A stretch of DNA of 64,000 nt from Schizochytrium sp. TIO01. Its lineage: Eukaryota > Protista > Bigyra: Labyrinthulomycetes. The position numbers and the translations under genes were made by a program. Under the pieces are notes generated by a model. That model was not told where the DNA came from, did no database searches, and saw nothing but the letters and a program-made list of their open reading frames with translations. How positions within the stretch are numbered: the stretch's first letter is position 1; each line of letters begins with the position of its first letter. The DNA lies in assembly GCA_004764695.1 (NCBI GenBank), contig SMSO01000034.1:1984001-2048000 (forward strand), written 5' to 3'. Below are positions 15,288-37,681 of this stretch, in pieces.

Positions 15288-15405
15288 ACATTCGATCATA
15301 CCACGCGGGTAACACCTCATCTCATTCGCACTGAGAAGTAAAGTCGCGTAGGGCCGGGTCAGTAGTATGATAGGGGACTGCATGCGAAGCCCCGGTGTTG
15401 AATGT
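15288..15405 (+). rRNA. 5S rRNA
   Basis: 118 nt ACATTCGATCATACCACG...GGTGTTGAATGT with pairing termini, box C-like AGTAGTATGATAGGGGACT and a following oligo-T Pol III terminator. Confidence 0.93.
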
Positions 15406-16663
15406 TTTTTTTTCCTTTATTTTTTACCGTTGCACTACAAGAGAGCAACTCCACGGTTGATATCACAATATTATTAAAAAATCATTTCATGAAAATAAAC
15501 CTGCCCGAAGAGGATTACAAGCACTGTAAGAACGGCAATTAGGCATCTACTCTCGGTCAAAGATGCTCCTCTTTTTGAAACTTTCCTTCCCTTCTTTCTG
15601 GCACACCTTTGGTCGCAGCCGCCAGTAGCTCTGATCGTTGAAAGCAACTCTCTGCTTTTTTCACATTGAAGCCGTGAAGCAAATATCCAACGACTCGACA
15701 CATCTTTAAAATCCGAAAATTGTCGACTTGCTCTCCATTCTCTCCCAAGCTTTCCCGATCTCAAGATAATCTATCATAGATCGCATCACAAACCTATTAC
15801 TATCTGATAGACAAAAACCTACTCCCGACAAGCAATTTATTTCTTGTATGACACAGTTACGAGTTTTCGTCGCTTCAAGACCTCACCAAAAACAACAAAA
15901 AGACTACAAGTTTTTGGCTCTTCTGTCTAATCGACCCCGATACAAGGACCTCTTCTTGCCTACTACTCGTTACACAAAACGCCATGACAATCGAAACTCG
16001 ACCTCCTTTTGCTCAACAAAACCCTACTCAATGCTATATATTATCAAACCAAAACAATAGCACCCATACACGATCACAAATGGATAGGGACCTTCCTACC
16101 ACGTTCTGTATTGTGTGTGACTTGGTAGAAGCACAACGCCTCCTCGTCTTTCTTCAAGAGCAGAATCCATTTTCACACCTTGCGCTCTCAGGAAAAAATT
16201 GACTCAACGGACCTTCGAAAACACTAGCAGCGCTTAACCTACGTATACAACCATGTATCATACCCAGCAACCTACTACTCTCGCCAAAGCCAGCCATCCT
16301 CGCAAACCCGTAACACGAGGCAGCGCGCACGCACGATATCCACGCCCCCGCGACCTCTCGCGCGCAACACCCCTTCACGCGTTCGTTACTCGTGACCGAG
16401 GCTTGGTCTGCAGAGGCAATTGCGAGGCATCGCAAGGAGTTCGCCCGTTCCTCCTTCTTTGCTGCAAAGAAGAAGGAGAAGAAGAAGAAGACAGAGCAGG
16501 AGTCTCCATTCCTGATCAGCAGCGCGAGCAAAGACTCAAACTACTCTCTCTCTCTCTCTCTCTTTCGAGCGCCAAAGCAAAGCGAAGACTAAGACAAGCA
16601 AAGTCAATCAACGCGATTGATCAATCCATCCATCAAAGGTGACACTCACTGCTGCAAAACACG

Positions 16664-19600
16664 ATGACTACGGCAAGCAAAATTGAGGACATCAGAGAAG
16701 ATACGACGGAGATTCGGTAGGTGCACGATGCAGAAGGGAGGAGACAGAAGAAGGAGGCATCGCGTCGTCGATGTGTTGTAGTAGTCAGCTTTGTAGAAGA
16801 AGAATAGTTTTGTACTAGTAGTGGCACTCATGAAGAAGTTGGAAATGGCATATACTTACTCTCACTTGTTCACAAACAAACAAACAAACACAGTCTTGGT
16901 GGGCACGACATTGGCTGGGAGGGCGCAAAGGCCGTCGCAAAGGCACTCGAGGGATGCAAGAACCTTCAACAATTGGAGTACGTTTGTGGAATCATCCACG
17001 AGGGAAAGCTATCGTAATAGTCAGGACCAAGCTTTTTCTTTCTTTCTTTTTAGTGCTTGGTGTTTGTAGACTGCTGGTACACTACCTAAGTAGTTTACGT
17101 AGTTGGGTACGCAAAGAAAGGCAAAGAAGTCTTTTCTATTTTACAAAGAGAAGAAGGAAATCTATATAATTTGATAGGCAGCAGCAGCAGCAAAAGAAGA
17201 GATGATTGCTATTTCTTGTGAGGAAAAACAAAACAAAACAGGATCAACTGACTGGACCTGTCTTTCCTGACAACGAATGAACAAAACAAACTTATTCATT
17301 TATACTCACAGTCTTGACAACAACAACATTGACGATGAGGGCGCAAAGGCCGTCGCAAAGGCACTCGAGGGATGCAAGAACCTGACTTATCTGAAGTACG
17401 TTTGTGGAATCATCCACGAGGGAAAGCTATCGTAATAGGCAAGACCAAGCTTTTTCTTTCTTTCTTTTTAGTACTTGGTGTTTGTAGTACTGCTGGTACA
17501 CTACCTAAGTAGTTTACGTAGTTGGGTAGGCAAAGAAAGGCAAAAAAGTCTTTTCTTTTTTACAAAAAGAAGAAGGAAATCTATAGAATTTGATAGGCAG
17601 CAGCAGCAGCAGAAGAAGAAGAAGAGCTGATTGCTTTTTATTGTGAGGAAAAACAAAACAAAACAAAACAGGATCAACTGACTGGACCTGCCTTTCCTGA
17701 CAACGAATGAACAAAACAAACTTATTCATTTATACTCACAGTCTTCGTAGCAACAACATTGGCTCGGAGGGCGCAAAGGCCGTCGCAAAGGCACTCGAGG
17801 GATGCAAGAACCTTCAAACTTTAAAGTACGTTTGTGGAATCATCCACGAGGGAAAGCTATCGTAATAGTCAGGACCAAGCTTTTTCTTTCTTTCTTTTCA
17901 GTGCTTGGTGTTTGTAGTACTGCTGGTACACTACCTAAGTAGTTTACGTAGTTGGGTACGCAAAGAAAGGCAATGAAGTCTTTTCTTTTTTACAAAGAGA
18001 AGAAGGAAATCTATATAATTTGATAGGCAGCAGCAGCAGCAGAAGAAGAAGAGCTGATTGCTTTTTATTGTGAGGTAAAACAAAACAAAACAGGATCAAC
18101 TGACTGGGACCTGTCTTTCCTGACAACGAATGAACAAAACAAACTTATTCATTTATACTCACAGTCTTCAGTGGAACCAAATTGGCTCGGAGGGCGCAAA
18201 GGCCGTCGCAAAGGCACTCGAGGGATGCAAGAACCTGACTCATCTGAAGTACGTTTGTGGAATCATCCACGAGGGAAAGCTATCGTAATAGTCAGGACCA
18301 AGCTTTTTCTTTCTTTCTTTTTAGTGCTTGGTGTTTGTAGTACTGCTGGTGTAGTTGGGTACGCAAAGAAAGGCAAAGAAGTCTTTTCTTTTTTACAAAG
18401 AGAAGAAGGAAATCTATAGAATTTGATAGGCAGCAGCAGCAGCAGAAGAAGAAGAAGAGCTGATTGCATATTATTGTGAGGAAAAAGAAAACAAAACAGG
18501 ATCAACTGACTGGACCTGTCTTTCCTGACAACGACTGAACAAAACAAACTTATTCATTTATACTCACAGTCTTTACAACAACAACATTGGCTCGGAGGGC
18601 GCAAAGGCCGTCGCAAAGGCACTCGAGGGATGCAAGAACCTTCAAACTTTAGAGTACGTTTGTGAAATCATCCACGAGGGAAAGCTATCGTAATAGTCAG
18701 GACCAAGCTTTTTCTTTCTTTCTTTTTAGTGCTTGGTGTTTGTAGTACTGCTGGTACACTACCTAAGTAGTTTACGTAGTTGGGTACGCAAAGAAAGGCA
18801 AAGAAGTCTTTTCTTTTTTACAAAGAGAAGAGGAAATCTATATAATTTGATAGGCAGGAGCAGCAGCAGCAGAAGAAGAAGAAATAGAGCTGATTGCTTT
18901 TTATTGTGAGGAAAAACAAAACAAAACAGGATCAACTGACTGGACCTGTCTTTCCTGACAACGAATGAACAAAACAAACTTATTCATTCATACTCACAGT
19001 CTCTCTGAGAACGACATTGGCCCGAAGGGCGCAAAGGCCGTCGCAAAGGCACTCGAGGGATGCAAGAACCTTCAACAATTGTAGTACGTTTGTGGAATCA
19101 TCCACGAGGGAAAGCTATCGTAATAGGCAGGACCAACCTTTTTCTTTCTTTCTTTTCAGTGGTTGGTGTTTGTAGTAGTGCTGGTACACTACCTAAGTAG
19201 TTTACGTAGTTGGCTACGCAAAGAAAGGCAAAGAAGTCTTTTCTTTTTTACAAACAGAAGAAGGAAGGGCAAAACGAAATCTATATAATTTGATAGGCAG
19301 CAGCACAAGATGAGGTGATTGCTTTTATTGTGCGGAAAACCAAAACAAAACAGGATCAACTGACTGGACCTGTCTCTCCTGACAACGAATGAACAAAACA
19401 AACTTATTCATTTATACTCACAGTCTTGGTGGGGGGGGTTGGGGGTGCAACAAGATTGGCTCGGAGGGCGCAAAGGCCGTCGCAAAGGCACTCGAGGGAT
19501 GCAACAACCTAACTCATCTGAAGTACGTTTGTGGAATCATTCACGAGGGAAAGCTATCGTAATAGTCAGGACCAAGCTTTTTCTTTCTTTCTTTTCAGTG

Positions 19601-22600
19601 CTTGGTGTTTGTAGTACTGCTGGTACACTACCTAAGTAGTTTACGTAGTTGGGTACGCAAAGAAAGGCAAAGAAGTCTTTTCTTTTTTACAAAGAGAAGA
19701 AGGAAATCTATATAATTTGATAGGCCGCAGCAGCAGAAGAAGAAGAAGAGGTGATTGCTTTTTATTGTGAGGAAAAACAAAACAAAACAGGATCAACTGA
19801 CTGGACCTGTCTTTCCTGACAACGAATGAACAAAACAAACTTATTCATTTATACTCACAGTCTTCGTAGCAACAACATTGGCGATGAGGGCGCAAAGGCC
19901 GTCGCAAAGGCACTCGAGGGATGCAAGAACCTGACTCATCTGAAGTACGTTTGTGGAATCATCCACGAGGGAAAGCTATCGTAATAGTCAGGACCAAGCT
20001 TTTTCTTTCTTTCTTTTTAGTGCTTGGTGTTTGTAGTACTGCTGGTGTAGTTGGGTACGCAAAGAAAGGCAAAGAAGTCTTTTCTTTTTTACAAAGAGAA
20101 GAAGGAAATCTATAGAATTTGATAGGCAGCAGCAGCAGCAGAAGAAGAAGAAGAGCTGATTGCATATTATTGTGAGGAAAAAGAAAACAAAACAGGATCA
20201 ACTGACTGGACCTGTCTTTCCTGACAACGACTGAACAAAACAAACTTATTCATTTATACTCACAGTCTTTACAACAACAACATTGGCTCGGAGGGCGCAA
20301 AGGCCGTCGCAAAGGCACTCGAGGGATGCAAGAACCTTCAAACTTTGTCGTACGTTTGTGGAATCATCCACGAGGGAAAGCTATCGTAATAGTCAGGACC
20401 AAGCTTTTTCTTTCTTTCTTTTTAGTGCTTGGTGTTTGTAGTACTGCTGGTACACTACCTAAGTAGTTTACGTAGTTGGGTACGCAAAGAAAGGCAAAGA
20501 AGTCTTTTCTTTTTTACAAAGAGAAGAAGGAAATCTATAGAATTTGATAGGCAGCAGCAGCAGAAGAAGAAGAGCTGATTGCTTTTTATTGTGAGGAAAT
20601 ACAAAACAAAACAGGATCAACTGACTGGAGCTGTCTATCCTGACAACGAATGAACAAAACAAACTTATTCATTTTTACTCACAGTCTTGGTTGCAACAAC
20701 ATTGGCTCAGAGGGCGCAAAGGCCGTCGCAAAGGCACTCGAGGGATGCAAGAACCTTCAAGAATTGTAGTACGTTTGTGGAATCATCCACGAGGGAAAGC
20801 TATCGTAATAGTCAGGACCAAGCTTTTTCTTTCTTTCTTTTCAGTGCTTGGTGCTTGTAGTACTGCTGGTACACTACCTAAGTAGTTTACGTAGTTGGGT
20901 ACGCAAAGAAAGGCAAAGAAGTCTTTTCTTTTTTACAAAGAGAAGAAGGAAATCTATATAATTTGATAGGCAGTAGCAGCAGCAGAAGAAGAAGAGGTGA
21001 TTGCTTTTTATTGTGAGGAAAAACAAAACAAAACAGGATCAACTGACTGGACCTGTCTTTCCTGACAACGAATGAACAAAACAAACTTATTCATTTATGC
21101 TCACAGTCTTTACTGGAACAAGATTGGCGATGAGGGCGCAAAGGCCGTCGCAAAGTATCTGCACAAAGCATGTCCTTCTATTAGAATCTAGTAAGTTTCG
21201 TTTGTTCTGCTGCTGATTCCAGCTTGTGCAGAGCCTTGCCTTCGCTGGTTCTCTCCATGTCTCCATATGGACTTTCGAGGCCGTCTTTAGATGCGTTCAT
21301 CGTTTTTCTAACAATCCCTTTTCTTCTCCTTCTTTCGTTCGTTCGTTTACAAAACGCAGCTGTGACATTTTGTCTGGAACCCCTAAAGAATTGTTCGAAA
21401 GGGTGTGTTCTCCTGGAGAGGACATTGCAGATTTCTCGTCAGAGCTCGATTCCTATGCTTCCATAGAGACTGCAGAAAGCGAGCCTTCTGCAGAGCCCAA
21501 GAACGAGCAAGATGGCGATGAGAGCGCCGGGCTTGCTACTTTGGATGGATCTGGGTAAGTTCATGCGGTCAGTCTTTGTTTGGGATCGTGTAATTATTCA
21601 TTCCACGAATTGTGTTATTGAGATAGAGGGTATCCTAACTTTTGCTTTTGCCTTTATTACTGGTTCAACACCATTTTGCTCGTTTGCTTACGTCTTCTTG
21701 TTCGCCTCAGAGAACGGCCGGATGGAGCGAGCGTGAGTTTCGCTGATGTGGTGCAGCTTGCCAAGAAAGTCTCGGACTTGCGCGCGGACCGAGGTGGGGT
21801 CAGAGGAAACTCCCTGCAGACTGGGATTGCCCTGCTTGAGGAATTCGTTCGACCGGCGATCCAGGGCTACTTTGGCCAAGTGAAGTTGCGACAGGTTTTC
21901 GCTGACATCAAGAACTCCAAAGAGAGTCTTGACGTGCTACAAGGCCAGATTCGTGCAAGCTCTGCTGATGGCTTGGCCAGCCTCATCGAAAAGCGGAACA
22001 CCGAACGGAGGTACCTGTATTCACTTTTGCAGGTTGTGTACCCATGGGTTCGCGCCAACCTTTGTGAAAGTGATGAGAGTGCAGTGCGAAAATTCAAAGT
22101 GAAAATTGAAAGTTTGGTAAGCGATCTAAAGATCAACCTTGCTCCAGTCGATGAAGAGACCATCGCAGATGACTTCAAACACTGCCAAGAACTCGTTATT
22201 CAGGCTGTCCAATGCGTGGAAGGGTACAAGAGGAGTGGAGAAGGCCAACCCAACAAAATTGGTGAACGAAGCCAACAAGCTGTAAAGAGCGTCATCTCTC
22301 GATTGTCTGAGCTAGGACTTGGTGATGGATTATCGGTTGCCCTGAGGACACCTGAGCAGGCCATGGAGCTAGAACCCGAGTTGTCTGAACTTGAAAGTGC
22401 TCTCAAGGAAGAGATTGATGTTCTACAAGGTGATACTTTTAGTGTCCAATTGTCCGAAATTCTTTGCGCGATAAGCTCAACATTTGCTCGATTTGAAGGA
22501 TACTCTGAAAGTTCTGCGTTGACTGACGCGAGCAAATGCACACCAACAGAGCTCTCTGAGCTGTATGACTATGTAGCACTGGGTTTGAAAGAACCAAATA

Positions 22601-24393
22601 TCATAGATGTTGAGGCATTATACCAGAAACTTGACAAGGCGAGGAAAGCTACAGAAAGTTTGAGGAGAATCAAAGAAGAACTTGAAACAGAAGAATTCGA
22701 TGAGGAAGAGCGATCATATTTTATAAATCGAATCAAGAAACAAGAGCTCATCCTCTCTCAAGGCAACCCAATATACCTTAGCAAAGCTTTTCGTCATAAG
22801 CTTGCTGAGACTCTGCAACACGCGCAGGAACATTATCCGGAGTTACTGCAAGATAGAGCCTGGCTGAAAAAGCTTCACGTAAGTGCAGAGGGTGTTTTTG
22901 AAGTAGCATGTTCTGACCTTTGGTTGCCGAATGTCACCGTCGCGGACTTCAAGCCTGTCGGCGAGCCCCTGTCCGTTGGAGGTGGCAAGAGAGTCCAGAA
23001 AGTATTTGATGGAGATGATAAAACTATGGTTCTCAAAGAGTTTCAGCTTGGACATCTAAGTCAATCTAAAACCTTCTACAGACAAGTTGCCAATCTGGGC
23101 AAAGTGGTGTCTCAGCACGTGATCCGTATCACTGGTGCTTTTGTGGACATGGCACATGGAGTACCGCGTGGTTGTATTATTATGCCTTTCTACGAGCAAG
23201 GTGACCTTGCCAAGTGGATTGAGAGTCATCCTAACGAAGGCAAAGCAGCGCGTGATCGACTTGCTGTTGGCCTACTTATCGGTGTGGCGGATTTACATAC
23301 CCACGGCATTGTGCATTGTGACATCAAACCAAAAAACATTTTTCTCACAAGCAACGGGACACCATTGATCGGCGACTTTGACGGCATCAAGAATGCAGAC
23401 TACACTGCAACTTACACATCACTTCAGGCAACGCCACCGTACGTTGCCCCCGAGTTGCAGAATGGGCCTGTAGATAGGTTTGAAACAGCGATGGACATGT
23501 ACTCTGTAGGCATCAGCTTAAAGGAGCTGTATCCTACTGAGCGAACCGCTGCAATGCAGAAACTTATCGATGCTCTTACAGCAACATACCCTGGGCAGCG
23601 TCCTACCGCTCGCCAAGCACTCCAACATGAAGCTTTTGGAGCTCCTAAGATCCCTGTCAAAATATGTCTAGTATGCAGGGAGGAGCATCTTCTTTCCGAC
23701 GGCACGAGCTGTGAGAGAGGGCACTTCCTTTGCCGAGACTGTATCGAAACTTCAGTAGAAAAAGCTGCGCAGCCACAGGCTTTTGTGACTATTGCTGATG
23801 ATGGGACAATGTCGTGTATTGAGCCTGGTTGTGATCGGGGAATCACGGGTCAAGAGTTGACTCGCCTTGCACCGAGGGCTTTGAATCATCTTTTGTTGAT
23901 TGCAAAGACGAGAGCAGAATGTGAAGCATCGGCCCAAGCTGAGAAAGAGACCCAAAAGCGCATAGCTGAAGCTTTACAAGTAGATGGTGACGTGCGGAGG
24001 CATTTACTGCACATAAAAGACAATATTTTGAACATGTTTTGTCCAAATTGTCATGTTTTCTTCTACGAATTTGATGCATGCTGTGCGGTAAAATGTGGTA
24101 ATGATACTTGTGGTCATCATTTTTGCGCTTGGTGTCTCGAGTATAGCTCTGAGAGCAGCGCTGCTTGCCATGATCATGTGCGTGAGTGCCCAAGAAATCT
24201 TACCAAGAAAAATAAAGTTTTCGCTGATTCAATCGAGCAGGTTCGTGAGGCATGGCGATTGCTACGCACAGAACGACTGTGCGAGTACTGGAATGAGAAT
24301 ATAAAAGACGAAAATCTTCAGGATGCTCTCAGACAGCAGCTTGTGCCTCTGCTAACGCCAGACATCGTTGACCCAGGATTTGGACTATGGTAA
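16664..24393 (+). CDS. LRR gene B: 14-exon, 1289-aa protein; RI-like LRR x11 - helical region - Ser/Thr-type kinase - RING - Rcat(RING2)-like domain
   Basis: Exons 16664-16716 (MTTASKIEDIREDTTEI), 16894-16977, 17312-17395, 17742-17825, 18165-18248, 18570-18653, 19000-19083, 19424-19522, 19861-19944, 20266-20349, 20685-20768, 21107-21190, 21360-21554, 21711-24393. All introns GT-AG, phase 2; total 3870 nt with no internal stop. Kinase motifs VLKE, HCDIKPKN, GDFDG, YVAPE, DMYSVG; RING CLVC..CERGHFLCRDC..CIEPGC; Rcat-like CPNC-x9-CCAVKC..CGHHFCAWC. Confidence 0.9.
16894..21190 (+). repeat. Tandem exon-intron array, ~405-440 bp unit, 11 LRR exons
   Basis: Unit = CACAG|T CTT-x-x-AAC-x-ATT GGC-x-GAG GGC GCA AAG GCC GTC GCA AAG GCA CTC GAG GGA TGC AAG AAC CTx-x-x-xTx-NN|GTACGT plus a near-identical ~320-345 nt intron carrying (GCA)n(GAA)n. 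Confidence 0.95.
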
Positions 24394-25820
24394 CTTCAAA
24401 AAGATAAGCTGTATTAACTAATCTTTGGGTACATTGTTTTGTGTAGTTGCCTAAGCTTAGGTTAGAGCAAGGTTTTCATTGTTTTCCTTGAAGTGAACTT
24501 GACAACTATGAAGCAGATCTCTTACTAGCTCAATCTCTCTGACTCTTGGATACGCTTCTATGATCTTCTCTTGTCAAATTCAAAACGCACCATTGTCCTT
24601 CAGTACGTTATATCTCCTTAATATTGAACTTTACGACTTATTCTCTGCTTTCAGTCTTTCCCGGGGACATCGCTTACTCTATAAGACCATACAGCCCCTC
24701 ATGGCTCCATCCTGTCATCAGAGCGACTGGCTAATCCTGAGCTTTTGAACCTGCTCCTGTACGTTTCCTAAAACTATGTGACGCCGAAGCATTCGTAATA
24801 CGTTACTACTTCGAGCAGATATTTCATTCATCAAAGGCAATTGTAGGACTATAACACAATTCACAGATTACGAAGTCTTTCCTACTGTAGAGACTAAGGT
24901 AATTCAATTTCATATTAAACAGTTTATTAACCTATCTTTCAGCAACTTTGGGAGGGCTGAGTCCACCTGGTCGTACAGCTTTTGATAAACTCGTCCCTGT
25001 CGAGTTGAATTGACGGCCAGAATACATCGCAGTAATGTCAAGCCTTGATTGATTATATGGCGTTCATTCGTCTAGAATACGTGTTACCTTTACGCAACCA
25101 AGCTCGCTTCTTCCGACTTGAAGTTCATTAATAATAGTAAAGTGTCTTTGTATTGAGTGTGCAAGAGCCGTATTGCCATGCTAGAATATGTGAGAAGACA
25201 CACTTCGCTGGCATTGCAAAGCCTAACATTTACTTACAGTCCAGCTCGCATCAACGCTAGACACAGCCGCATCGAAGATATCGCATGGCAGATGGGTGAG
25301 TTCTTGTGCATGGCAATCCTTAGATGTTATTGAGATTGGAAATTATTAAGAAGGTTGAAGTTGTGATTTTACTGGCGATTACAGTTTGGGTACGTCAAGT
25401 ACTAAGCTGGATCATTAATTGTCATGCGTGCTTCCTTAAACTCTTTTGATTATTCCGTTACATCGATTACATTCAACAAATGATAAGACTGACACAAGTT
25501 AAACTATCTGCTGGAGTAGATAGGTTGTGATTTCCTCCTAAACTCTACAAAATCACACAATTAGAATTGAATAATTCAAATACTGAGAGTATAGGCACTT
25601 ATTTTCTCATTCTTTTCTCCTTTTCTACTTTTATTAAATTGACAACAAACACGCACACTTCAGACCGTGGCGTTGCCTCACCCGACTATCTTTAATTCCA
25701 TAGGCTTCAAATTGCCCGGATTGGGTCTACAAGTGGTCAGAAAGGTGTTTAACAAGCATGGTCTTGCTGCTTGTCTGCAAGAGCTTGGCCAACGAGGTCA
25801 GCAGTCGAAGGCAACAATTT

Positions 25821-25925
25821 AAACAGCAACGCAAGAAACAGTAACGCAAGAAACAGCAACGCAAGAAACAGCAACACAAGAAACAGCAACGCAAGAAACA
25901 GCAACACAAGAAACAGCAACGCAAG
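25821..25925. repeat. 15-bp minisatellite (AAACAGCAACGCAAG) x7
   Basis: Read directly; explains the repetitive spurious ORFs at 25727-26106. Confidence 0.9.
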
Positions 25926-26204
25926 AGCGTGGAAATTCACGCACGAGCATATATAGCAAGAGCTCTTTTGATAAATAAATCGAAAGATTCAAGGAGCGCT
26001 TGCGAATGGCTCGTGAAGAAACTCGACACCAAGGTGAAGAACTAGTCACAGTCAGCACAATCCAAAGAACCTCTTGCGCCCGACACTTCCATCTCACCTG
26101 CTCCACATGATTTGCGTGCCTACAAAGAGAACATCACGCATGCTATTCACATTGCCCAATGATCCCTGACCCTTCTTGTTCGAACCTGTGGACCTGCACT
26201 ATAT

Positions 26205-26625
26205 GTCATTGCTGAGATCTCCAATCGAAGGAACGAGTGGATAAGACATTGCCAGAGTTCTTGGTGTCCCTTTGTAAAGCCCAATAGAGATAAGGTTTAC
26301 ATTAGAACAAGAATAGGCAGCCAGACTCATGAGGATGCTGAAGCCAAGAACTAGAAGTGTGAATGCACATCACGGAAACCCAAGCTTGGTTTAGCTTGGA
26401 TCAATGGTTGGAGGAGGTTGGATAACCTAACCCCATCGATTATCTCTAACCACATACAAGAATGTCTTAATCTCCCTAATTACTACATGGATCCATCTGT
26501 CCTGGAATTCATTCCTCAGGACAGCAGTTCGCTAACACTTAAATCAACCTTCTTTTAACCTTCATCAAGCTTCTTGCCTTCATTCTTACAGTCAACCTCA
26601 CGCTAATCAGTATCACCTTTCAGCA
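26205..26625 (+). repeat. Dispersed ~420 bp repeat family, copy 1
   Basis: GCTGAGATCTCCAATCGAAG...AGAGTTCTTGGTGTCCCTTTGTAAA...CAGTCAACCTCACGCTAATCAGTATCACCTTTCAGCA; homologous to copies 2-4. Confidence 0.8.
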
Positions 26626-27234
26626 GTCATGAAGAGGTGAAGCCGGATAGTATAGACATAATAATATTGCGCCAAGCTGCATTGCATCTGTTATTCATGC
26701 TTGAAGTCCTTCATCAGCTCAATATGTAATGGCGGACTCTCAGAAATATGTGAGAATGAGAAACACTTTTTATGTCGCGAATGCAAGGATATAATTCCAA
26801 TCTTCCAGGTTAGAGAGGCAACCTTCCATCAGCGACTTGCGTTTGCTGGCAAACGCAAGTCGCATAATCTTATACAAGGAGTAGAGTCCAGACGACCGAG
26901 GAAAATGCCAGAACTCGGGCAGGGCATGCTGAACGCATAAGGGCCGCATATGCTATACGCCAAGCTTGAGAAATGGTCAGGTACAAAGAGGATGAAAATG
27001 GTAGAATACAAGCTCAAGTCGAGGAAGTGCAAGGATTCGAGAGGAGCATACCAAACGTGTAACGGATGCACATGCTACGCGTAAGACTGAGGAACGGGAT
27101 AGGTGCAAGCCCAAGAAAAGACTTACGTGCAGCGCCAAACTCAACAGGCACAGCGTGTATTAGCAGAGCTCGCAAGATGTGAAGCAGAGCAGGAAAGAGG
27201 AATAGTCCTACGGCGCGCACAGATACATATACGC

Positions 27235-27655
27235 CACCTGATGAGATCTCCAATCGAAGTAGCTAGTGGACAATACATTGCTAGAGTTCTTGGCGTCCCT
27301 TTGTAAAACCCTCACAGGCACAGGGCCTACAATAGAGCAGTAGTAGACAACCAATTTTACGTGGCTGCCAGAGTGAAGAATCAAAAGCGTGAATAAACAT
27401 AGCAAGGTTTAATTATGGTGTAACTTAAATCAATAGATGCAAAGATTAAATTAACCTAGCCCTGTCAAGCATCTTTAACACTATTCAAGAAAACCTTAGC
27501 CTCCGAAACTACTACATGAATCAATCTATCCTAGAGCTCATTTCCAGGACAGCCGTTCGCTAACTCTTAAAATCAACCTTCTTAAAGCCTTCATCAAGAT
27601 TCTTGCCTTCATCTTTACAGTCAACCTCAAGCTGACAAAAATCATCTTTTACCAG
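27235..27655 (+). repeat. Dispersed repeat, copy 2, preceded by a relic ORF ending ...RSPIEVASGQYIARVLGVPL*
   Basis: Same anchors as copy 1; ORF 27103-27306 ends inside the repeat. Confidence 0.75.
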
Positions 27656-30266
27656 CTACATGGAGAATTCTATATTACTGACATGCTGTCCCAGCAGTCA
27701 TCCAGTTTTGATTTTGATGGAGACTTTGCTCTGGCTTGCTTAACGTGTGGTTGCACATTACCTTACAAACTGCTAAAGCGTTGAAGGAACTCGCAGACGC
27801 ATCCTTCACTGTAGTCAGAGGAATTCCAGCTCTTATGGAGTTGCTAAAACTGACGAAGAGTTCCGAAATTCTTGTCATGCGCGATACCAACGGCGCTTCA
27901 GAACTTATTGGGGCCCTGACGAAGCTCAAAGCGATTTAGGAGACGTGCTGAGGCTAACGCATGACAGAAGCTCACTAAGATCTTCTTGAGCCTTAGCTAC
28001 AAACACTTGGCTTCTTTTAATGTGCCCCTTCATGAATTGTTCTTCCTCATGAAGTACCTGTAGATCTCACTCTTTAACAAAGTAATTTACTACCACCTAC
28101 TCCCCAAGTGGTAGCTATGTACATTATTTAAGTGCAATCGCCAGTGAGGTTCCCCTACAACAAAAGTCCAAAACAATGTCAATAGAAATCTTGAAATGTT
28201 AATTAAAAAATTCAAGGCATCTAGGAAATCGAATAAAAGCAAGCAGAATGAGAATATAAGAAAATTATCATTATGGCGTACGTGCAGGCAAACCAGTGGT
28301 TTATGCATTTACCTGCGATGTTGAAATTATCTAAATGTATTGTTCCAAGACTACCCTGCAGAGATCTTGATGTTGCAGTGCTAGTGCTCGTAAGACGCTC
28401 GACGCGTTCGATCTCCCCATTAAATATCACTATAATAACCCTTACCTTCAGTCATCTCCCTAGAAGAGTAGCATTGGCTTGCCTAGAGTTTCACAAAAGA
28501 TCATCTATCTTCTCTTCAAAAGTTCAAAGAAACTCAATCTGCCTCGGACTTTTTGTCTCAGCAGCACTATTTTGTCTTTGCTGACATTGACTCCTCTTCC
28601 TTTTTTGTGCTAGATTTATGAATTTCTTTCAGCAAAGACATTGTCTTGTTTCAGTTCGACCTCTACTCAGGCGAAAGTAATGCCAGTCTGTCAGCCATAC
28701 AACTCGCTTCCCAGGTTTTGAATCTACTTCTGTAAAACATTTTACTGATAAATCTTTCAACCATAAGCTCTTCAATCCTCCTTTTTTTTTTTAAGTAAAT
28801 CTCTTTGAAATTATTCCATTGACATCTTCTATCTCCTGACCATTCACATGTGGCAACATTGGAGACCTTGCAGTCAGCTTGGTCATCTCAGATATTGTAG
28901 CGTTGCTTATATTTGCTTAGCTTACATCACAGAAAGGTATTGTAGGTTTCCCCGGTACTATGTAACTTGCAACCAAGGTAATGTGCTTTGATAATGCTAC
29001 TTCTATGCAACGCTACGAAGATTGCTGTCCAAGGTGTCCAATCTGAGTGACCCAAGTTTTCCTTTTTTTTTTTTAATGATGTGTTTGTTTTGCCATTACA
29101 AGTTTTGTCAGGAATAACGGCACGTTCTGGTTCTGGATAAGGCCATACAGTTCACACATTCCATCTTTAGATTCAGTAAATATTCGAGCGATTTCAGTAT
29201 CTAAGAGAAAAAAAAATGAAACGATTGGACCACCGCTTAACATTCTCTGTATGGAACTATCGCAACGCTCGACCTTAATGTCATGACCAAGTACCCCGTA
29301 AGGTTTAGGTTGACTTCTTGCACAGTGCTAAATCATAAACGTCTTTATCTTATTAACCAGTTTTTATTAATGAATCGAATCATCACTTCCCTTTACCCAG
29401 TAAGCATGTCTCCTTTTAGATTTTAGACATCCTCCCGTGAGATAGGAAACTCAAGGAGGTGAATATGCAAAACCCTTTGCAAAAAGTTGTCTTCAGCATA
29501 TTTATCCAAAGCGACTGAACGCCCTAATGCCTTAGACACGCCACAACAACCAGAGTGCAATCGCAGAAATGTCGAGTTATGAATTGTGTTCCCTAGAATC
29601 TTTTAGATAAACTTGCAAGTATCAACAGGATCCTGTAAATGATGCACATTCTTAAAATTTATAACAGTGGGTTTTTCGCTGAGGTATACAAATCGAGGCA
29701 GACTTGTATAGGATGTGCATACACTTAGCACTTTGCCAGAGCCTTCTAATAAGCCAGACTGAGTCATCGGCTGAGTATGGGTTTGTAACCTAGCCTTCAG
29801 CTCCTACAGTTCATGCCCCGATTTGCCTTCAACTATGCAAGCTAGAGTAAAGCAACGACTACTACTTATTCGCTTATGCAAGATGCCGTTGAAAATTCTC
29901 AATCATTTCGGGCAATTTCGGGCTAGAAAAAGAACTGCAATACATTTTTCAACCGTATACAATATTTGTAATATTCACAAGTGAAGCAATCGGTTCTTGA
30001 AAAGGCGTAGGCTACAACTCAACCAACAGGATAGAGGCATAGGTTTACGAAGTTTTCGTTTTTAGATAAGTCTATCCAAAATGCAAAGTCGGCACTTGTT
30101 TAGTAAGTTACTCTGCGACACATGTTTCTGTTGTGTCTAAAAATAGCAGACTTGCTGATTGCTGACTTTGCTGCTGCTCAATATCAACTGGTACTTCAAC
30201 AAAGTGAAACAAATTAATTGATATGGAGGTCTGTAGTATAGAAGCCAGAGTTCGACTTGCTCGATC

Positions 30267-30384
30267 ACATTCGATCACACCACGCGGGTAACACCTCATC
30301 TCATTCGCACTGAGAAGTAAAGTCGCGTAGGGCCGGGTCAGTAGTATGATAGGGGACTGCATGCGAAGCCCTGGTGTTGAATGT
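30267..30384 (+). rRNA. 5S rRNA, second copy
   Basis: 118 nt, two substitutions relative to 15288-15405; followed by TCTTTTT. Confidence 0.9.
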
Positions 30385-32256
30385 TCTTTTTGCAATTTTT
30401 TCCCAAACCACTCATTTTTGGTACTTTGATATGAATCACTAATAATTGAGCAATGATATCAGTTCTCCACACAAAGCGGGGTTAATCTGTTCATTTTTGA
30501 CATACGTACTGGTGTCGTTGTCTTACTATCAACATTCCTGAATAATAAAATTGATAGGGCATCACAAAATTGATGTATCCTATTTTTTTTGCAATGCATT
30601 CTAAATTAGGCACAAAGAGAAAAATAAACAAAATCACTTTGCATTAATGGATGATCTACTAAGGAAAGACAGGGGCAGTTGCATTCTCTGTAAAGCACGT
30701 TTGCAGAAACAAATGAAACTTACGCACGAAAGTCTCAGTAAAGTGAATAGAAGATTCACAGAAAAAGGTCACACTTGCTTTTAAAAGGGGCCATGCTTAC
30801 CACGACTCTCAATCGCGAGATATATATTGTTCATTTCAAACGCCATTCGCCGGCCCGAGGATTAATTTTTCATCTTGTTCGTTTGCCCTGGTGGCGGACT
30901 CACAAGGTAACAACGCAGTAGTTGTAAGTTGAAGATGCCCATCAGCAAATTTAAGGAAATGACATGTTTAACAGCTTTCCTGAAGACAGCCATGTTATAA
31001 TTACTATATTTCGAAACAAAGGCAAGTACGAGGAACTTTGATTTAAATTCTCAAGCCACCTAAATTGATTTGGGATTCTAGAGGAACAAATTTGGCCATC
31101 AAGTGATTTACGAGATTTTGTTTTTAGTTTTTCCTAAACCAAGTTACTATTGGTACTTCAGTATAAACCTGCTAGGGTGGAACACATTCATTTACGAAAA
31201 ACCGAAGTCATAACTTAACAATATAACACAACGTTGTAATTGTCGCAACACTAATATGCCAAAATACACTAGATCTGATTGCTTTTCGTGCACAGTGCGA
31301 AAGATAATGATATTTCTTTACTCTATCACTTTATGAAGGAAGCACTAGTATCTGTATAGAGTCCGACAAAATGCACTACGAAATTCATGTCTGTTTTAGG
31401 CATTTGCAATGGTGGCTGCGGTGATTGCTTATTACACCATGAAGGACCCAGATCAGAAACCCTATTCAAAAAGGTTGTTATTGCTATTATCCTGGCTAAA
31501 ATGTGCATAGCATAAGAACAAAAACTTCATAACCCCCAGGTCTGAGACCACTCGATATGGTGATTATTTGATTTTCTTGCCACCCATGAAGTTGCTCGTG
31601 TTTGTGAAGAATTGTTCGTTACTTTAGTCAGCAGCAAATTTCAAAACCCATAACCAAGAGCAAAACAGTCACATACTGAGATTGACCAAGCTTGTGAATC
31701 AGCATCGATTACTTTCTCTAGAGAACATGCATTTGCCTTGATGTCAGACCGGAGGCCTTGCTTGTCGAAGGGCCAATGATAGCAGGAGCTCGAGCCTCGT
31801 CGAAGTCTCGCAGAGCCAAAGTTACTGCGATTTGATGTCACAACATCGTTCGTTTTGGCGGCCAAGCAGAGGAAACCGGAAGCTACGTAGCCTTCAAGCA
31901 CAGGTAGTCAACCCAGCATGTTTGCTAAGACCAAACGAACCACCCACTATGCCCCACCTGCGCACGGCCAGAGCGTCTGAAGCAGATCTCTATGATTTGA
32001 TTCAAGTTCTAATGCTTCTCCTTTTAATTATTCCCACACTTTGTTATAGAAATGAAAGACTAGAGTTCAATCTATCTAGAACAATAGTTAAAGAATTATC
32101 TAACTAGGATTTACATAACCTTAGCCTGCTTGCAATTCTACAGTTGAGAACTATGATTGCAAGCAACTACTTTACCTACACTAACGTCAAAGCCAGACAT
32201 TGTACGTTTTGATTGCGCAACACCTTCTTCTATTTTTCTCTAAGCTGGAGAAGGGG

Positions 32257-32672
32257 TTGCTGAAAGGTGATACTGATTAGCGTGAGGTTGACTGTAAAGA
32301 TGAAGGTAGAAGGCTAGATGAAGGCTATAAGAAGGCTGATTTAAGAGTTAGCGAACTGCTGTCCTGAGGAATGAATTCCAGGACAGATGGATTCATGTAG
32401 TAGTTAGGGAGATTAAGACATTCTTGAATGTGGTTAGAGATAATTGATGGGGTTAGGTTATCCAACCTTCTCCACCATCGATCCAAGCTAACCAAGCTTT
32501 GGGAGTCAGTGATGTGTAATTACACTTCTAGTTCTTGGCTTCAGCAGCCACATAAATCTGGCTGCTTATTCTTGTTCTAATGTAAACCTTATTTCTAATG
32601 GGTTTTACAAAGGGACACCAAGAACTCTAGCAATCTCTTGTCCACTAGTTCCTTCGATTGGAGATCTCAGCA
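32257..32672 (-). repeat. Dispersed repeat, copy 3 (inverted)
   Basis: Plus strand shows TGCTGAAAGGTGATACTGATTAGCGTGAGGTTGACTG...TTTACAAAGGGACACCAAGAACTCT...CTTCGATTGGAGATCTCAGC, the reverse complement of copy 1. Confidence 0.8.
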
Positions 32673-35600
32673 GGGGTGTCTTTTTTTCTTTCGAATCTGT
32701 ACGACGACTGCAAACTTCGAATTATTTAATCTGTGCATAAATGCAGTGAATAATAAGTGCTTTTGAATCCTTCATTGGGACTTTACACACAGCTTCCTCC
32801 CGAACACATCTCTGTCAAAGCTTAACTTGCAAATCGTTAGATAGCTGCTTGTTTATATATTTTATGGTGTGATCTCACAAAATGCGTTCTTTTTTATCCT
32901 TTACGAGTTCCTCTTTGTGTGGCATCTCCAAATTGACAAATGTCCTTCCTTAGCCATAAAACGGACTAGTTATGAAATAAGTTGTAGTTTTCGTTCTTTG
33001 TGCGATTCCTTATTGCACTGTATTCTCCTTCAAACCAGGTTTTCTTTTTCAATTTTATTGAAAAGCAGAGGGTAACTTATTGTGCTTAGCTACCAAACAG
33101 TTGGTCAGAGGACTTGCTTCGAAAGAGCTGCAACATCATCGTATTTCAAAGGTTCTGGAATCTATCTAAATATGTTGTGGCGTTTTGGCGCTTGCAGAAA
33201 GCTGCATTATATCTGTTCTAAAGAATGTCAATGCGTATAGACCGGGATTTGTACGCATTTGCTTAATCAAGGTCCGCCATTACACTAAACACTCTTTGTG
33301 TATAGTATATGATTGTTACTTTAGAGTCTTGATGGAAACTGGATTAGTTTAGTTGCCTTCATCAAGCGTACAATACTTAATATAAACTGTGTTTGCCTCC
33401 AGGAAACAAAATTTCCAATTCATCGACACTCAAAAAAACAAAGTTCGACTTTACTGCGGCTTCCTCAAACATTCGAGGAATAGTCCCTATAAAAGCTTTT
33501 TGATAGACGAGGTCTTACAAAAGGTCTACCCTCTAAGGATAATCTCTACAAATATAACTATTGAAGTAATATACAGCTACTGTCTAACCTAACCTAACCT
33601 AACCAAGCTCTCCTATCCACTCATTACCCTGCCTGTATGCAGACCTGAAACCCCGATAACTCATATTTCATCCTCTTTCTCTTTCTCCTGAGTTCGTCAT
33701 CCTTGTCAGACTACCTCTCCACGCTTCACAGCTCAGGCTACTCTGCAATAATAACTTTGAAAATTTCTTTGTTCCACAGTTCCCTCTCGTTGAATAATTT
33801 TTTATCGTCATCTAGCACAATACCTCTTACTAAACTGTCCCCAAAATTAAAACAATACACAACGCATTTCAGAACACTCCGTAATTATGATGCTATCTTC
33901 TCAATTTCAAAACAAGTAAGGATTTTTATTCAAAACCATTCTGAGGTCTCGATTAAAAACGTCTTATCAGGCAACATCTAAAATAAATTAAAATCGCTCT
34001 GCAATCATTCTTCTCTGACCTCAGCGTCCATTGCTCTGTGATTGCTCTTAAGCTTGATCTACTATTATGGTATACAATTTTGAACTTGACAATTAACGTT
34101 TTAGTTAATCCTGCAACAAGTGGGTTTCTTCAGAGCAACTCAGATTGCTGCCTACCCAGTGCTACCTGTACTGGTGCGCAGTACTCAGACTCGTTTTAGT
34201 GCAACCACAGAATCATCATGAAGACTACTTTAATAAAAAAGAAGATCTCATCTACAGCGATAATTTCTGTCATTTCAAAAATTGCCATATTTCTCACTTT
34301 AAAAAAAAGAAAAAAAAAAGTACAAAACTTGTTTTGTTTTTAATGAAATAATTAGAAATAAAACATCTTCTTCTTATAAATTGTTTTAATTAATTAAAAA
34401 CAAAACATTAAATTAAAATGATTTTATTCTATAAACAATAATTTTGAAATTTATTAAACTAAAGCAACTTTTACAGATAAGTTGAATGATAAACCTACTC
34501 TACTAGGAATTGAAAATGTATGGCAAATTGGAGGATAATGTCGCAGAGGTTGAAAGACTTTACGCAATGATTGCCGACGGTTGTGAATGTGTTTGTTCTA
34601 TTCTTTAGGCAATCTTGCTAGAATAATATGAATGGACCACTGAGCGATGGTGCCGGCTTAAATTGATTTCATTGCAACAAGAAATCTAGACTCTCTGGGA
34701 GTTCATTACTATCCAAGCTTGAACCAAGGTAGTCCTCTAATCGATAATATTCCGATCAATAGTTTTGTTCTTAATTATTATGTCTTTTTATGTATTAAAT
34801 GAAGCATTCACATTGCATTAGTAACAACTTGTGATGCTTTTGTTAATCCCGTAGTTAATGTCATATAATGATAACAAGCGATCCACACAATTTTTATCTC
34901 GGAGGACACTTACAAGCATATGTTGTGGGTGAAGGTGTATCTTTACGTTAAAAAGCGTATGACATATTGATATAAGTTCTGCAATTCAAAATGTTTAGGG
35001 ATAGATAAGCTTTATATTCTCTTCTTTTTTTAAACCATTTCTTTTTAAAAGCAAGTTTAACAAATATTTAGTCTGTCTTCTCTTTCTTCAAATTAACTCT
35101 TAAAAAACAAAAAATAGGTGATGCTATTATCTTCGTATTTAATTGTTCAAAATTGGAAAACAGATTGACGCCGGTAATCTAGAGCTTTACAGCGCGTTGT
35201 ACCAATTTTCATACTACATCAAGCCAGCTGGCTTTATATTTAGTGTTTTTTTTTTGTTTTTTTTTTAATGGATCGATTTAAAGTAGTTTAATATAAACGT
35301 ATGTAGTAAACATACTTTTTTAATGTCTCCCGAACAGTTGCACTGCACCTAACTGATTCATAGTTTCATAATCCAGGTTACGATTTTGAGTTTGGAGCAA
35401 TGTAGTTAGTATAGCAAAACACAAACATATATGTCAGACATCAAAGTTATGTAATCAGAACGAAAATTTGATGTAGCTTTTAGACAGGGCCAACATTCAC
35501 AAAATCATTTTAAGATTTATTAGACATTCCCCAGGGCCAAGAAATATATAGCAAATTCAAATAACATGCAGGCCGACAGAGCGTTTTGCTGATCAACACA

Positions 35601-37438
35601 ATGATCTATTATAAATAAGCAACTAATTTTGTATTATCTCTTTATTTTGAAAATAAATAGAATGCTTAAATGTATATTTTAAATGTTTACTCCTTTCTTA
35701 GAAAAATCTTTAAAAAGATGTTTTAAAATTCATCTTTTAATTGTAATAACTTTTAAAATTTTGAAATGAATACAAAATTTTAAAACTAAATAAATATTTT
35801 AAAAATAACAACACGAGATTGTTTACTACAAATGTTTGTTTTACTTTATCATCAGAAAGACGGGTCGCAGTCGCAGCAAACAATAACAAAACGTTCAACA
35901 ACCCCCTTAGATATTTCAGTTTGATTCGTACCTTTGCGATCCACAATGCATGATAACACTTTTGGCTTAATAGCTGTCCAAAAATACTACGTTGCTTATT
36001 CGAATCATGAACGATTCTTTCAATCGAAATTGTGAGATTACATCAGCAACTGTTGCTCTTGTCATACTTCATTTTGATTTAAATTCTTCTTAGGCGAGTT
36101 TATGCATAAGGTATACTTTCTTTAAATTATACTGAAACTTAGGCTGATGCCTTTTCATGATTTAAAATAATACTGTTTAGTAACGGTGCTTTAAAATATA
36201 ATGTGCTAGTTTAAACATGTTCGAATGTATTGTTTGTTTCTTAGAACAACGGGTGGACATTTGAACCGGCCAAGTCAGGCTGTTTGTCAGCATGTTAAAT
36301 TATCTCAAGCATTTCTTTATAGACTCTGAGGCACCTAGTTTACTTTTCAAAGTAGCTCACATTCAGAGAACGCCAACCTACTTGTCAAACCTACTTGTCA
36401 AACCAACTGTGTCATTTGATTACATGCCACTAAATTTCTTTGAAAGTAACAGTCTTCAGAAATGTTGTGCGTACGTGGAGGTCAATGAGACTTTGTCCAA
36501 GTGCTTTTCGTAGAACTGAGGAAACATAATTCATTATTGTAGTTGTGTCGGAGAAACTGCTACCCAGACAAGGAGCAGAATCATCTCTTGGACACTGATG
36601 ACAGGCTCACTTAAGAATAATTTGTTTAGCACAAAGTACGAATCTCTTAGTTTCTTGCGAAGTTATACACAGCTAAGTGCCTAACCTCGCCTACCTAACC
36701 TAATCTAGCTCTCCTGTCTGACACTCTTCGGTCCGACATGATACATTTATTCTGCCTGCATTCAACTTTGAAACTCTAATATCAAAATATCCTCTTCCTC
36801 CACTTTCTCCTGAGCGGACCGTCCATGGTAGACCCCCTCTGCACGCTTCGCTACACAAGCCAATCTACAATTACTTCGAAATCAACCATTTTTGACTGGT
36901 ATATTCAGCACAACATGGGCGGGTCCTAGAGTATATGTTATCATCGCAATGCACTTATGTGTTGCCTACAATTTTCAGAATGATATTTTTATTTTCAAGG
37001 TAGTACATGTTTTAGCAATTGTAGCTATAGATATAATTATTCTGCTTTGTGAGAAATAATAACCATACAATAATCAAGCTTGAGTGCACCAATTTTAGAA
37101 AGATTTTGTTCCTGTCAAAAAAGTAGAATTTACCTCATTGTGGAAACTATTCTATAATAACTCATTATCCGCAATAAGGGATTTCTAAAGCCCAGGACAA
37201 CGCAGGCTTAAGGTAAGGTAATAACAAAAGTTAAGTCTATACATACTGCAAATAGGAACTCAATTGTAGATTGTTCATGTGCAAAATGAGGGGCATGCTA
37301 GAATTGCTGAATCTTGATGTTCTCAAGATAAGCTTTTCCTAGTCTCCAAGCCATCAAGTTGAGTCGAAGTCTTGCACGGCAGGATGCCTTCCACATACAA
37401 AAAACGTTTTATTAATATTTGCACACACCAAAAATATT

Positions 37439-37511
37439 TGATCGAACCGAGAGTCGAACTCGGGACCAACAGCTTACTAAACTGTCACTCTACCAACTGA
37501 GCTATCCGAGC
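37439..37511 (-). tRNA. tRNA-Thr(AGT)
   Basis: GCTCGGATAGCTCAGTTGGTAGAGTGACAGTTT-AGT-AAGCTGTTGGTCCCGAGTTCGACTCTCGGTTCGATCA; cloverleaf with one acceptor-stem mismatch. Confidence 0.85.
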
Positions 37512-37681
37512 GCAAGTTCATGCCCTTGGCTTTAGTGCAGAATCAAGCTATCCTACAATTCAATCTCTATGCTTGCAAAAATGTTGCCTTAAGCATGTTC
37601 TTTCAATCAAGTCCTAAGGAGCATATGATACTCTGTCTGAATTTAAGAACTCTTCAAATGTGCAAAAAATCAAATTAGATT

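Follow-up and report, generated by a model that had tools for sequence, protein, structure and literature searches.

An rDNA-linked repeat array of Schizochytrium sp. TIO01 as the probable exon array of a hypervariable leucine-rich repeat gene with a kinase and an RBR-like ligase module

We analyzed a 64,000-nucleotide stretch of Schizochytrium sp. TIO01 DNA (assembly GCA_004764695.1, contig SMSO01000034.1, positions 1,984,001 to 2,048,000 of the forward strand), here called the window, and within it a tandem array together with the long open reading frame (ORF) that follows it. The initial annotation, made from sequence alone, had claimed that this apparent ~420-bp satellite is the exon-intron unit of a coding gene, and the tandem structure, the constant phase, and the open exons all bear this out. 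Positions 16664-24393 probably constitute a real, spliced, 14-exon gene encoding a 1289-aa cytosolic protein with leucine-rich repeats (LRRs), a protein kinase, and an RBR-like ubiquitin ligase module, and the family to which it belongs probably serves as a recognition repertoire. The codons of the predicted ligand-facing LRR surface are hypervariable, and the DNA around them is kept nearly identical across the genome.

Gene model, splicing, and predicted protein

The features of the gene, all on the plus strand, are as follows.

16664-16716, plus: exon 1 (53 nt), with ATG, 17 codons and 2 nt, donor GTAGGT; hydrophilic; read from the sequence
16889-21155, plus: tandem array of ~430-bp exon-intron units, 10.1 copies, found with Tandem Repeats Finder
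16894-21190, plus: eleven LRR exons with phase-2 introns on both sides (regular expression, translation, and LRR_6)
16894-16977, 17312-17395, 17742-17825, 18165-18248, 18570-18653, 19000-19083, plus: LRR exons 1-6 of the array
19424-19522 (99 nt), 19861-19944, 20266-20349, 20685-20768, 21107-21190, plus: LRR exons 7-11 of the array
21360-21554, plus: acidic linker exon (195 nt), acceptor CAG, donor GTAAGT
21711-24393, plus: last exon, with 1 nt, 893 codons and stop, from translation of the ORF at 21676-24393
21712-22977, plus: helical region of ~420 aa, family unknown, no Pfam family
22978-23631, plus: protein kinase domain (Pfam Pkinase; HCD, DFD, APE; Gln replacing the alphaC Glu)
23665-23832, plus: RING1-type zinc finger, C652 to C707 of the last-exon protein (conserved Cys, structural match to RNF216)
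23878-24030, plus: long helix in the position of the IBR of RBR ligases (helix 90-140 of the modeled module, predicted local distance difference test score (pLDDT) above 90)
24040-24189, plus: Rcat/IBR-type zinc finger with candidate catalytic Cys C790, codon 24079-24081 (family consensus, Pfam in relatives, VIA, ESM Atlas)

Tandem Repeats Finder reported the array with a period of 430 and 88% matches. The expression CACAG|exon|GTA[CA]GT retrieved 11 exons, of which ten measure 84 nt and one measures 99 nt; the 84-nt exon per unit originally described thus holds for ten of them, and the longer one already figured in that description's own list of motifs. Units measure 405-435 bp and typically consist of an 84-nt exon and an ~340-nt intron. 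In every LRR exon, the first base, T, completes a split codon and the last two bases open the next, all 11 exons are stop-free in phase, and their introns are phase 2 on both sides. Translation reproduced exactly the listed exon starts (LGGHD through LYWNK) and exon ends (QQL-D through QEL-Y). As the intron splits the beta-strand LxxL|xLxxN in the middle of a codon, any exon is interchangeable with any other.

The exon lengths sum to 53 + 10 × 84 + 99 + 195 + 2683 = 3870 nt, or 1289 codons plus stop, which confirms the single open 1289-aa frame that had been proposed; frame continuity was checked both arithmetically and exon by exon, and none of the junction codons is a stop. The last exon starts at 21711, and its codons, from 21712 on, are in frame with the 905-aa ORF (21676-24393). 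Exon 1 and intron 1 recur with 84-100% identity at 12 paralogous loci (75% at the broken copy L023), and the linker exon recurs at paralogs with 80-98% identity, mostly full-length and partial (52-68 nt) in four. No signal peptide or transmembrane segment was found in the predicted protein, as had been stated; hydropathy (Kyte-Doolittle) reaches at most 1.34 over 19 residues and the N-terminus is hydrophilic. Independent support for the model comes from a public 1240-aa protein (P0017), which is 39% identical across 676 aa and likewise combines LRR_6 (E 1.4e-33) and Pkinase with this C-terminal module.

Splicing had been predicted at these junctions, and we examined read contigs over 20680-25200, an interval placed beside most of the array to avoid the long repeat. 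Three runs of presumed RNA (X4, X8, and X22; their RNA status is guessed) were compared with the best DNA run (X1). The RNA-type runs consist of assembled contigs from related strains, with 33-55% shared words, and mostly sample paralogs. A GT..AG joint removing 21555-21710 (21554 to 21711) was present in X4, X8, and X22 at depths of 570, 30, and 387, respectively, as was a joint from exon 11 to the linker exon (21188 to 21375). Exon-to-exon joints appeared in two or three RNA-type runs, either from 20768 to 21117 with other variable letters between, which come from paralogous exon pairs, or as joints that "go back 74". The DNA run had none of these joints over the same interval. In the RNA-type runs, summed contig depth, a soft measure only, fell 4-42× from the first bin with exon sequence (20680-20830) to the pure-intron bins; in X1 it was no lower there.

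The assignment of one LRR of ribonuclease inhibitor (RI) type to each exon also stood. When the exons were searched one at a time, Pfam LRR_6 was the sole family matched, by 10 of the 11; one exon scored 24.4 bits against the gathering cutoff of 23.4, and the others 16.6-22.4. The matches are confined to profile positions 10-24, because the intron cuts the beta-strand. Across 146 exons, the consensus L-x-x-N-x-I-G-x-E-G-A-K-A-V-A-K-A-L...N-L-x-x-L-x has the 28-29 residues and the LxxLxLxxNxIGxxGA...L pattern of RI-like repeats.

The helical region that opens the last exon gave no Pfam family and no usable ESM Atlas match, and is conserved in relatives at 50-57% identity. A homologous-protein search returned only three close relatives. 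Pkinase then matches last-exon residues 423-607 (E 1.6e-27, 97 bits against a cutoff of 31.7), in agreement with the kinase originally named, here of Ser/Thr type. The catalytic Lys, the Asp of HxD, the Asn, and the Asp of DFx are all present. K442, D537, N542, and D555 do not vary among the paralogs and the relatives with 50-57% identity, and K539 and Q458 are likewise invariant in alignment A1. ROC-COR GTPase, NACHT, and NB-ARC domains are absent, as Pfam detects kinase families alone in the last exon (893 aa) and no family in the linker.

For the window's own sequence, the C-terminal 260 residues matched no Pfam model above threshold. An exhaustive profile search nevertheless collected 1,924 relatives among public proteins (E <= 1e-3), and a 64-row alignment of the module revealed two conserved zinc-finger patterns. 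The first, C-x2-C-x11-C-x3-H-x2-C-x2-C-x24-C-x4-C, keeps all eight zinc ligands, with the Cys conserved in at least 90% of the 64 relatives. The second follows an Rcat-type consensus, CPxC-x9-GC-x4-C-x4-C-x3-FCAWC..H-x-H..C, in which Ala replaces Gly in the window protein. The candidate catalytic Cys, C157 of the module, is conserved in at least 90% of relatives. We take the spacing CPxC-x9-[G/A]C-x4-C-x4-C-x4-C-x2-C to be that of Rcat in Parkin and HHARI, which would put C790 at the catalytic position. Between C74 and C144 the 64-row alignment shows neither a conserved Cys nor a conserved His, and the model has a continuous, confident helix at 90-140; with one long helix and no zinc ligands between the fingers, there is no IBR zinc finger.

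An AlphaFold2 (AF2) model built with the 64-row alignment reached a pLDDT of 93.4; an earlier variant with 12 paralogs alone reached 56 and was discarded. Nearly all top Foldseek matches of the retained model are RBR ligases, the best being RNF216 (E 5.6e-5). With VIA-align, module residues 16-110 superimpose on the RING1 of RNF216 (Z 11.2, root-mean-square deviation 2.4 Å, 89 residues), which makes this an RBR-type RING1 fold, and the RING1 domains of Parkin and ARIH2 score Z about 7.5. Residues 116-249 align with the helix-RING2 part of RNF216 (RNF216 residues 647-772; Z 5.0-5.5). IBR-family Pfam models (IBR_1, IBR, or IBR_2) were matched among the relatives, IBR_1 in 21 of the 64, and the ESM Atlas neighbours of the second finger are RBR/Rcat_RNF216 clusters. 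A sequence-profile search of the PDB returned weak matches only, to the RNF4 RING (E 0.005) and the ARIH1 RING2 (E 0.49). On this model, the module is predicted to be an RBR-like ubiquitin ligase of RING1, long helix, and Rcat-type finger, with no IBR between RING1 and RING2; of the two fingers initially read from the sequence, the RING is recovered and the Rcat stands as a candidate. In public proteins of other organisms (P0018, P0021, P0040, and P0045), a kinase plus RING1-helix-Rcat cassette is fused to ankyrin repeats, LRRs plus ankyrin repeats, a WD40 propeller, or a ubiquitin-like domain, which fits a modular sensor-effector logic.

Hypervariable codons on homogenised array units

In the 64-Mb assembly, at least 345 matches to the array unit were found, spread over 20 contigs with 91-97% identity; many lie <100 kb from a contig end. 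The last-exon protein has at least 51 paralogs among 316 candidates, with 58-84% aa identity, and about 43 of them are full-length without a stop. Of the 31 array sites listed, 29 lie directly upstream of a gene body on the same strand. Among 12 gene bodies, mean synonymous divergence (dS) is 0.256 and the ratio of nonsynonymous to synonymous divergence (dN/dS) is 0.29, which indicates purifying selection. At one site (L021, G000:C5:13016-14596), a three-unit array with its ATG exon lies between two 5S genes with no kinase-ligase body detected downstream, which makes it an orphan or a copy that has been truncated.

To describe variation within the units, we used 167 exons from 20 arrays, 146 of them 84 nt long and the most diverged paralogs left out, and 335 intron columns from 120 units. 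Among the 146 exons, amino-acid entropy reaches 3.4, 3.2, 2.6, and 1.7 bits at codons 2, 3, 26, and 25, respectively; it is also high at the split codon 28, and most core codons stay below 0.8. In the register L24-x-x-L27-x|L1-x-x-N4, the variable codons are the x positions of LxxLxLxxN (x25, x26, x28, x2, x3, and partly x5), which form the solvent-exposed concave face of an LRR. The variable codons have a nucleotide diversity of 0.556, compared with 0.075 for the remaining exon positions and 0.028 for the introns. The claim that coding sites vary more than neighbouring introns therefore stands, with a contrast (0.56 against 0.028) of about 20-fold. Of the 146 exons, 137 are distinct, and each array has a series of its own.

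This variation is overwhelmingly amino-acid-changing. When exons are compared in pairs at the hypervariable codons, the residue differs in 84% of comparisons, and each residue is almost always encoded by one codon, pairs with the same residue using a different codon in 9.4% of cases against 3% in the core. A Nei-Gojobori count gave pN 0.60 and pS 0.37 (nonsynonymous and synonymous proportions), and we rejected the latter as a measure of synonymous divergence; given one codon for each residue, it arises from multi-step paths. The expected excess of nonsynonymous change over intron divergence was found, in that the differences are almost only amino-acid-changing. One in-frame stop was observed at the variable codons of the 146 exons, against 36 expected from base composition, or 16 without the two-allele codon 8, a depletion far beyond chance. 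Residues at these sites are rich in N, Y, T, S, G, and D, and 5% are aliphatic. Selection on the protein fits this pattern better than blind hypermutation does.

Length also varies at these sites. A G-rich in-frame insertion (LGGGGWGC...) falls in the 5' variable patch in four arrays (19424-19522 of the window, L008, L009, and L010), and L009 has a 33-nt insertion at the same spot; we read this as length variation of the binding loop. Frameshifted exons (79-85 or 100 nt) make up 14 of the 167 and occur mainly in L004 (C7:1062000-1071999), L013 (C12:10000-19999), and L018 (C23:26000-35999), with indels mostly within the hypervariable hexamer.

The units around these codons are homogenised between loci. 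Intron distance is 0.026 within arrays and 0.028 between arrays, and 86 of 120 units have their nearest neighbour in a different array, in contrast to the attached gene bodies, which differ by dS 0.26. Units are thus exchanged between arrays on different chromosomes, which keeps introns and the helix-coding core at about 97% similarity throughout. The window is colinear with contig C5 over 3605-24295. Between 12400 and 17600 its identity to G000:C5 (~35100-40300) is 99.5-100%, and it drops to 85-95% within the array after the second unit; this marks a recent exchange that ended inside the array. The near-identical tract spans an "aged" LRR gene, the 5S gene, the promoter, exon 1, and the first two LRR units.

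The variable codons do not follow their introns. Pairs of units with 0-1 differences over ~335 intron positions still differ at 3.95 of 6 nt in codons 2-3 of the next exon, and there is almost no linkage between the 5' and 3' variable patches, which lie about 60 nt from each other. A shuffled module made of half-exon, intron, and half-exon was not supported, with linkage across the intron at chance (6 against 4.4, P 0.26); linkage within the exon was slightly above chance (11 against 4.7, P 0.02). An apparent excess of core differences among pairs with identical introns was traced to one frameshifted exon, in L018. The decoupling of variable codons from introns is the least explained feature of the system, and because of it a targeted or micro-conversion mechanism stays in play as a rival account.

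Ribosomal DNA context, function, and alternative readings

The LRR gene sits between two consecutive 5S genes in a region of ribosomal DNA (rDNA).

15288-15406, plus: 5S rRNA gene upstream of the LRR gene (Rfam RF00001, 96.5 bits); the 5S-to-gene spacing is the same at other copies
30267-30385, plus: next 5S rRNA gene (Rfam, 93.8 bits)

Two complete 18S-5.8S-28S operons lie on the minus strand in the same orientation, ~34 kb apart, at 3940-9456 (28S 3940-7283 and 18S 7670-9456) and 41424-46945, with four tRNA genes between them (37439-40632); their position is internal to a contig that extends beyond 4.8 Mb. From 24400 to 41400, over the 17 kb from the end of the gene to the second operon, there is no ORF of at least 150 aa on either strand, and 5S and tRNA genes are present. 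A 15-bp tandem repeat occurs at 25821-25926. The same order of rDNA, 5S, and array is found at the ends of contigs C5 and C34. A second array occupies 56559-64000 on the minus strand, with 385-bp units (4 + 14.7 copies) and 84-nt phase-2 exons that encode RI-type LRRs. Its exon starts (for example LERNQ, LSWNK, and LEGNY) are variable in the 5' patch, and its 3' end is constant.

This layout matches repeats described in Aurantiochytrium limacinum as LORE-TEARS (bioRxiv 10.1101/2023.06.15.545109; Collier et al. 2023, Curr Biol). Group 5 repeats of ~421 bp occur there in about 5 copies between consecutive 5S genes by subtelomeric rDNA, and Group 0 repeats of ~385 bp between 18S and 5S; both were proposed to be non-coding spacers that maintain chromosome ends (bioRxiv 10.1101/2023.06.15.545109). 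The ~421- and ~385-bp Aurantiochytrium repeats that the initial annotation mentioned are as that paper describes, and their position agrees with the window. In the literature searched, we found no use of the term outside the A. limacinum paper. Here, the period is 430 (units of 405-435 bp), 5S genes flank the array at 15288 and 30267, and the ends of C5 and C34 have the same layout. By period and position, and not by alignment to the published sequences, the window units correspond to Group 5 LORE-TEARS; by period, the array at 56559-64000 corresponds to Group 0. The G-rich insertion described above is probably the source of the G-quadruplex predictions reported for LORE-TEARS.

We propose that selection would keep a diverse recognition surface on this homogenised scaffold. 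A variable ligand would be bound by the LRR arc and read out as phosphorylation and ubiquitination, and the family could then act as a germline-encoded repertoire of sensors inside the cell or of restriction-type ligases. Plausible targets are the viruses or parasites of this protist, and we infer an immune function.

Several points weigh against this proposal. In the kinase, an invariant Gln (Q458) stands where the alphaC Glu is expected and DFD replaces DFG, and the Rcat-like finger has no His two residues past the candidate catalytic Cys, so that, judged from these residues, either enzyme could be inactive. The RNA-type contigs being mostly paralogs of related strains, the expression of this copy, its full-length splicing, and the junction of exons 1 and 2 are predictions. 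The 14 frameshifted exons may be pseudogenes, or parts of pseudogenised arrays, or consensus errors of the assembly, and intron conservation could partly reflect constraint instead of exchange. Regarding the equivalence with LORE-TEARS, this assembly has internal copies, and the A. limacinum preprint reports internal rDNA/LORE-TEARS sets at one site only (bioRxiv 10.1101/2023.06.15.545109).

One alternative, which we judge unlikely though credible, accepts a real and variable family and gives it a role other than defence, either as substrate adaptors of a kinase-E3 ligase in endogenous regulation or in self/non-self or mating-type recognition. The occurrence of the kinase and RBR-like cassette with ankyrin, WD40, or ubiquitin-like domains elsewhere suits a substrate-adaptor logic as well as an immune one, and expression is not linked to infection. 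Endogenous substrates, however, seldom bring residue-changing diversity close to saturation in each repeat of about 50 paralogs. Fast-recombining subtelomere-type blocks and variable sites rich in N, Y, T, S, G, and D and poor in aliphatic residues also resemble known recognition repertoires, as established for variable lymphocyte receptors (VLRs) and plant R genes.

A distinctly unlikely alternative traces the beta-strand codon diversity not to ordinary mutation with subsequent selection but to a dedicated mechanism, such as targeted mutation or templated conversion over very short tracts, possibly somatic, for which the arrays would be the substrate of programmed diversification. Even where the 334-nt introns and the exon cores of two units are identical, a hexamer 4 nt inside the exon still shows differences at about 4 of its 6 nt, and such a mechanism would also accommodate the near absence of linkage between the two patches and the fall of length variants and frameshifting indels in the same patch. 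The same hexamers recur across arrays (CGTAGC in 7 and TACAAC in 8), which fits copying. Untargeted hypermutation, on the other hand, would also yield synonymous variants and stops, and what is seen is a 9% codon difference and 1 stop against 16-36. With synonymous variants and stops so few, any account has to include selection on the protein. Neither a candidate enzyme nor a store of templates was identified, and the data, being one germline assembly, have no bearing on somatic change. A fuller version, in which short-tract conversion or targeted mutation at splice-flanking beta-strand codons, possibly with any-to-any exon skipping, draws an open-ended repertoire of cytosolic LRR-kinase-ligase sensors from homogenised subtelomeric cassettes, strikes us as very unlikely. 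If true, immune logic of an adaptive-like kind would exist outside animals, in a host that carries persistent mirusviruses.

It is extremely improbable that the repeats are structural, non-coding subtelomeric spacers for chromosome-end or rDNA maintenance with incidental exon-like features: they were published as such, adjoin rDNA and 5S genes, and are homogenised together with those blocks, but they have constant phase and splice sites, stop depletion, an LRR consensus, and spliced joints in RNA-type runs, and 29 of 31 array sites are attached to an intact, constrained kinase-ligase exon. As an exclusive account this is already contradicted; a coding role leaves room for a second, structural one.

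These findings give a published genome feature a new reading: at least two LORE-TEARS classes appear to be exon-intron modules of large LRR gene families, so that the "universal subtelomeric rDNA" blocks of this protist would also house a fast-evolving, receptor-like repertoire. The arrays offer an unusually clean natural case in which diversity is held at five or six ligand-facing residues and the surrounding DNA is homogenised, with a ~20-fold difference over 120 units. The analysis also defines a widespread, unannotated RBR-like module (RING1-helix-Rcat, no IBR; 1,924 relatives) coupled to a kinase and to interchangeable sensors (LRR, ankyrin, and WD40). Persistent mirusviruses occur in the presumed organism (PMC12606086), which can be cultured and transformed, so the immune hypothesis is directly testable.

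Relation to known systems

With Groups 5 and 0 of the A. limacinum LORE-TEARS, the arrays share unit sizes, the placement of Group 5 between two consecutive 5S genes, the direction of transcription (toward the contig end for rDNA, away from it for 5S), and repetition at many chromosome ends; they differ in that both classes here carry in-frame LRR exons. The C-terminal module shares with the RBR E3 ligases (RNF216, Parkin, HHARI/ARIH1, and HOIP) a RING1 fold, a helix followed by an Rcat-type finger, and the CPxC...GC...C...C...FCxxC spacing, in which a conserved Cys occupies the candidate catalytic position. It differs from them in having no IBR and no His two residues after the candidate catalytic Cys, and in falling below the threshold of every Pfam model.

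The likeness to lamprey VLRs and to var, VSG, and plant R-gene clusters (e.g., PMC6102362) is conceptual and drawn from established knowledge: recombining cassettes in recombination-prone regions and concave-face diversity are the points of resemblance. Here, in contrast to lamprey VLRs, var, and VSG, there is no evidence for somatic assembly or mutually exclusive expression, and the protein is predicted to be cytosolic with enzymatic effectors.

Similar in architecture are the ROCO and NB-ARC-TPR receptors of Ectocarpus (Zambounis et al. 2012, PMC3341825; 2024 follow-up, PMC11378527), also from a stramenopile, in which a single exon encodes each LRR, exons are shuffled, and concave-face sites are positively selected; an immune-receptor role has been proposed for those genes. 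The initial annotation had cited one-LRR-per-exon shuffling in brown algal ROCO genes, and for Ectocarpus this is correct (PMC3341825). Ectocarpus differs in its 72-nt exons, plant-type LRRs, and ROC-COR GTPase effector, whereas the genes described here have no ROC/COR or NB-ARC and their units are satellite-like in homogeneity.

Similar in exon grammar is Tetrahymena, with thousands of LRR genes (more than 1,000) and arrays of 90-bp exons (Xiong et al. 2019, PMC6564038). According to the available text of that paper, it shares one LRR per fixed-length exon, >98% phase-2 introns with a split "junction" codon, a tandem exon-plus-intron unit (~347 bp) detected as a genomic repeat, ectopic recombination that scrambles exons between paralogs, and some members fused to a protein kinase. 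The phrase "positive selection" does not occur in that text, which reports no such analysis. Compared with what is described there, the exons here are 84 nt, the repeats are of RI type, and the genes number about 50 instead of more than 1,000; the constant helical-kinase-RBR-like partner, the rDNA/5S linkage, and a quantified contrast between hypervariable codons and near-identical introns are further differences.

The window array shares with the Tetrahymena and Ectocarpus receptors equal-length exons, same-phase introns, one LRR per exon, and tandem units exchanged between paralogs. As the Tetrahymena arrays of phase-2 90-bp LRR exons and the Ectocarpus genes already represent this kind of system, the novelty first implied holds for the variant and not for the kind. 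What is new here is the organism, the probable equivalence with a published "spacer", and the constant helical-kinase-RBR-like effector without an IBR, together with the rDNA/5S linkage and the measured contrast between hypervariable codons and the homogenised DNA around them.

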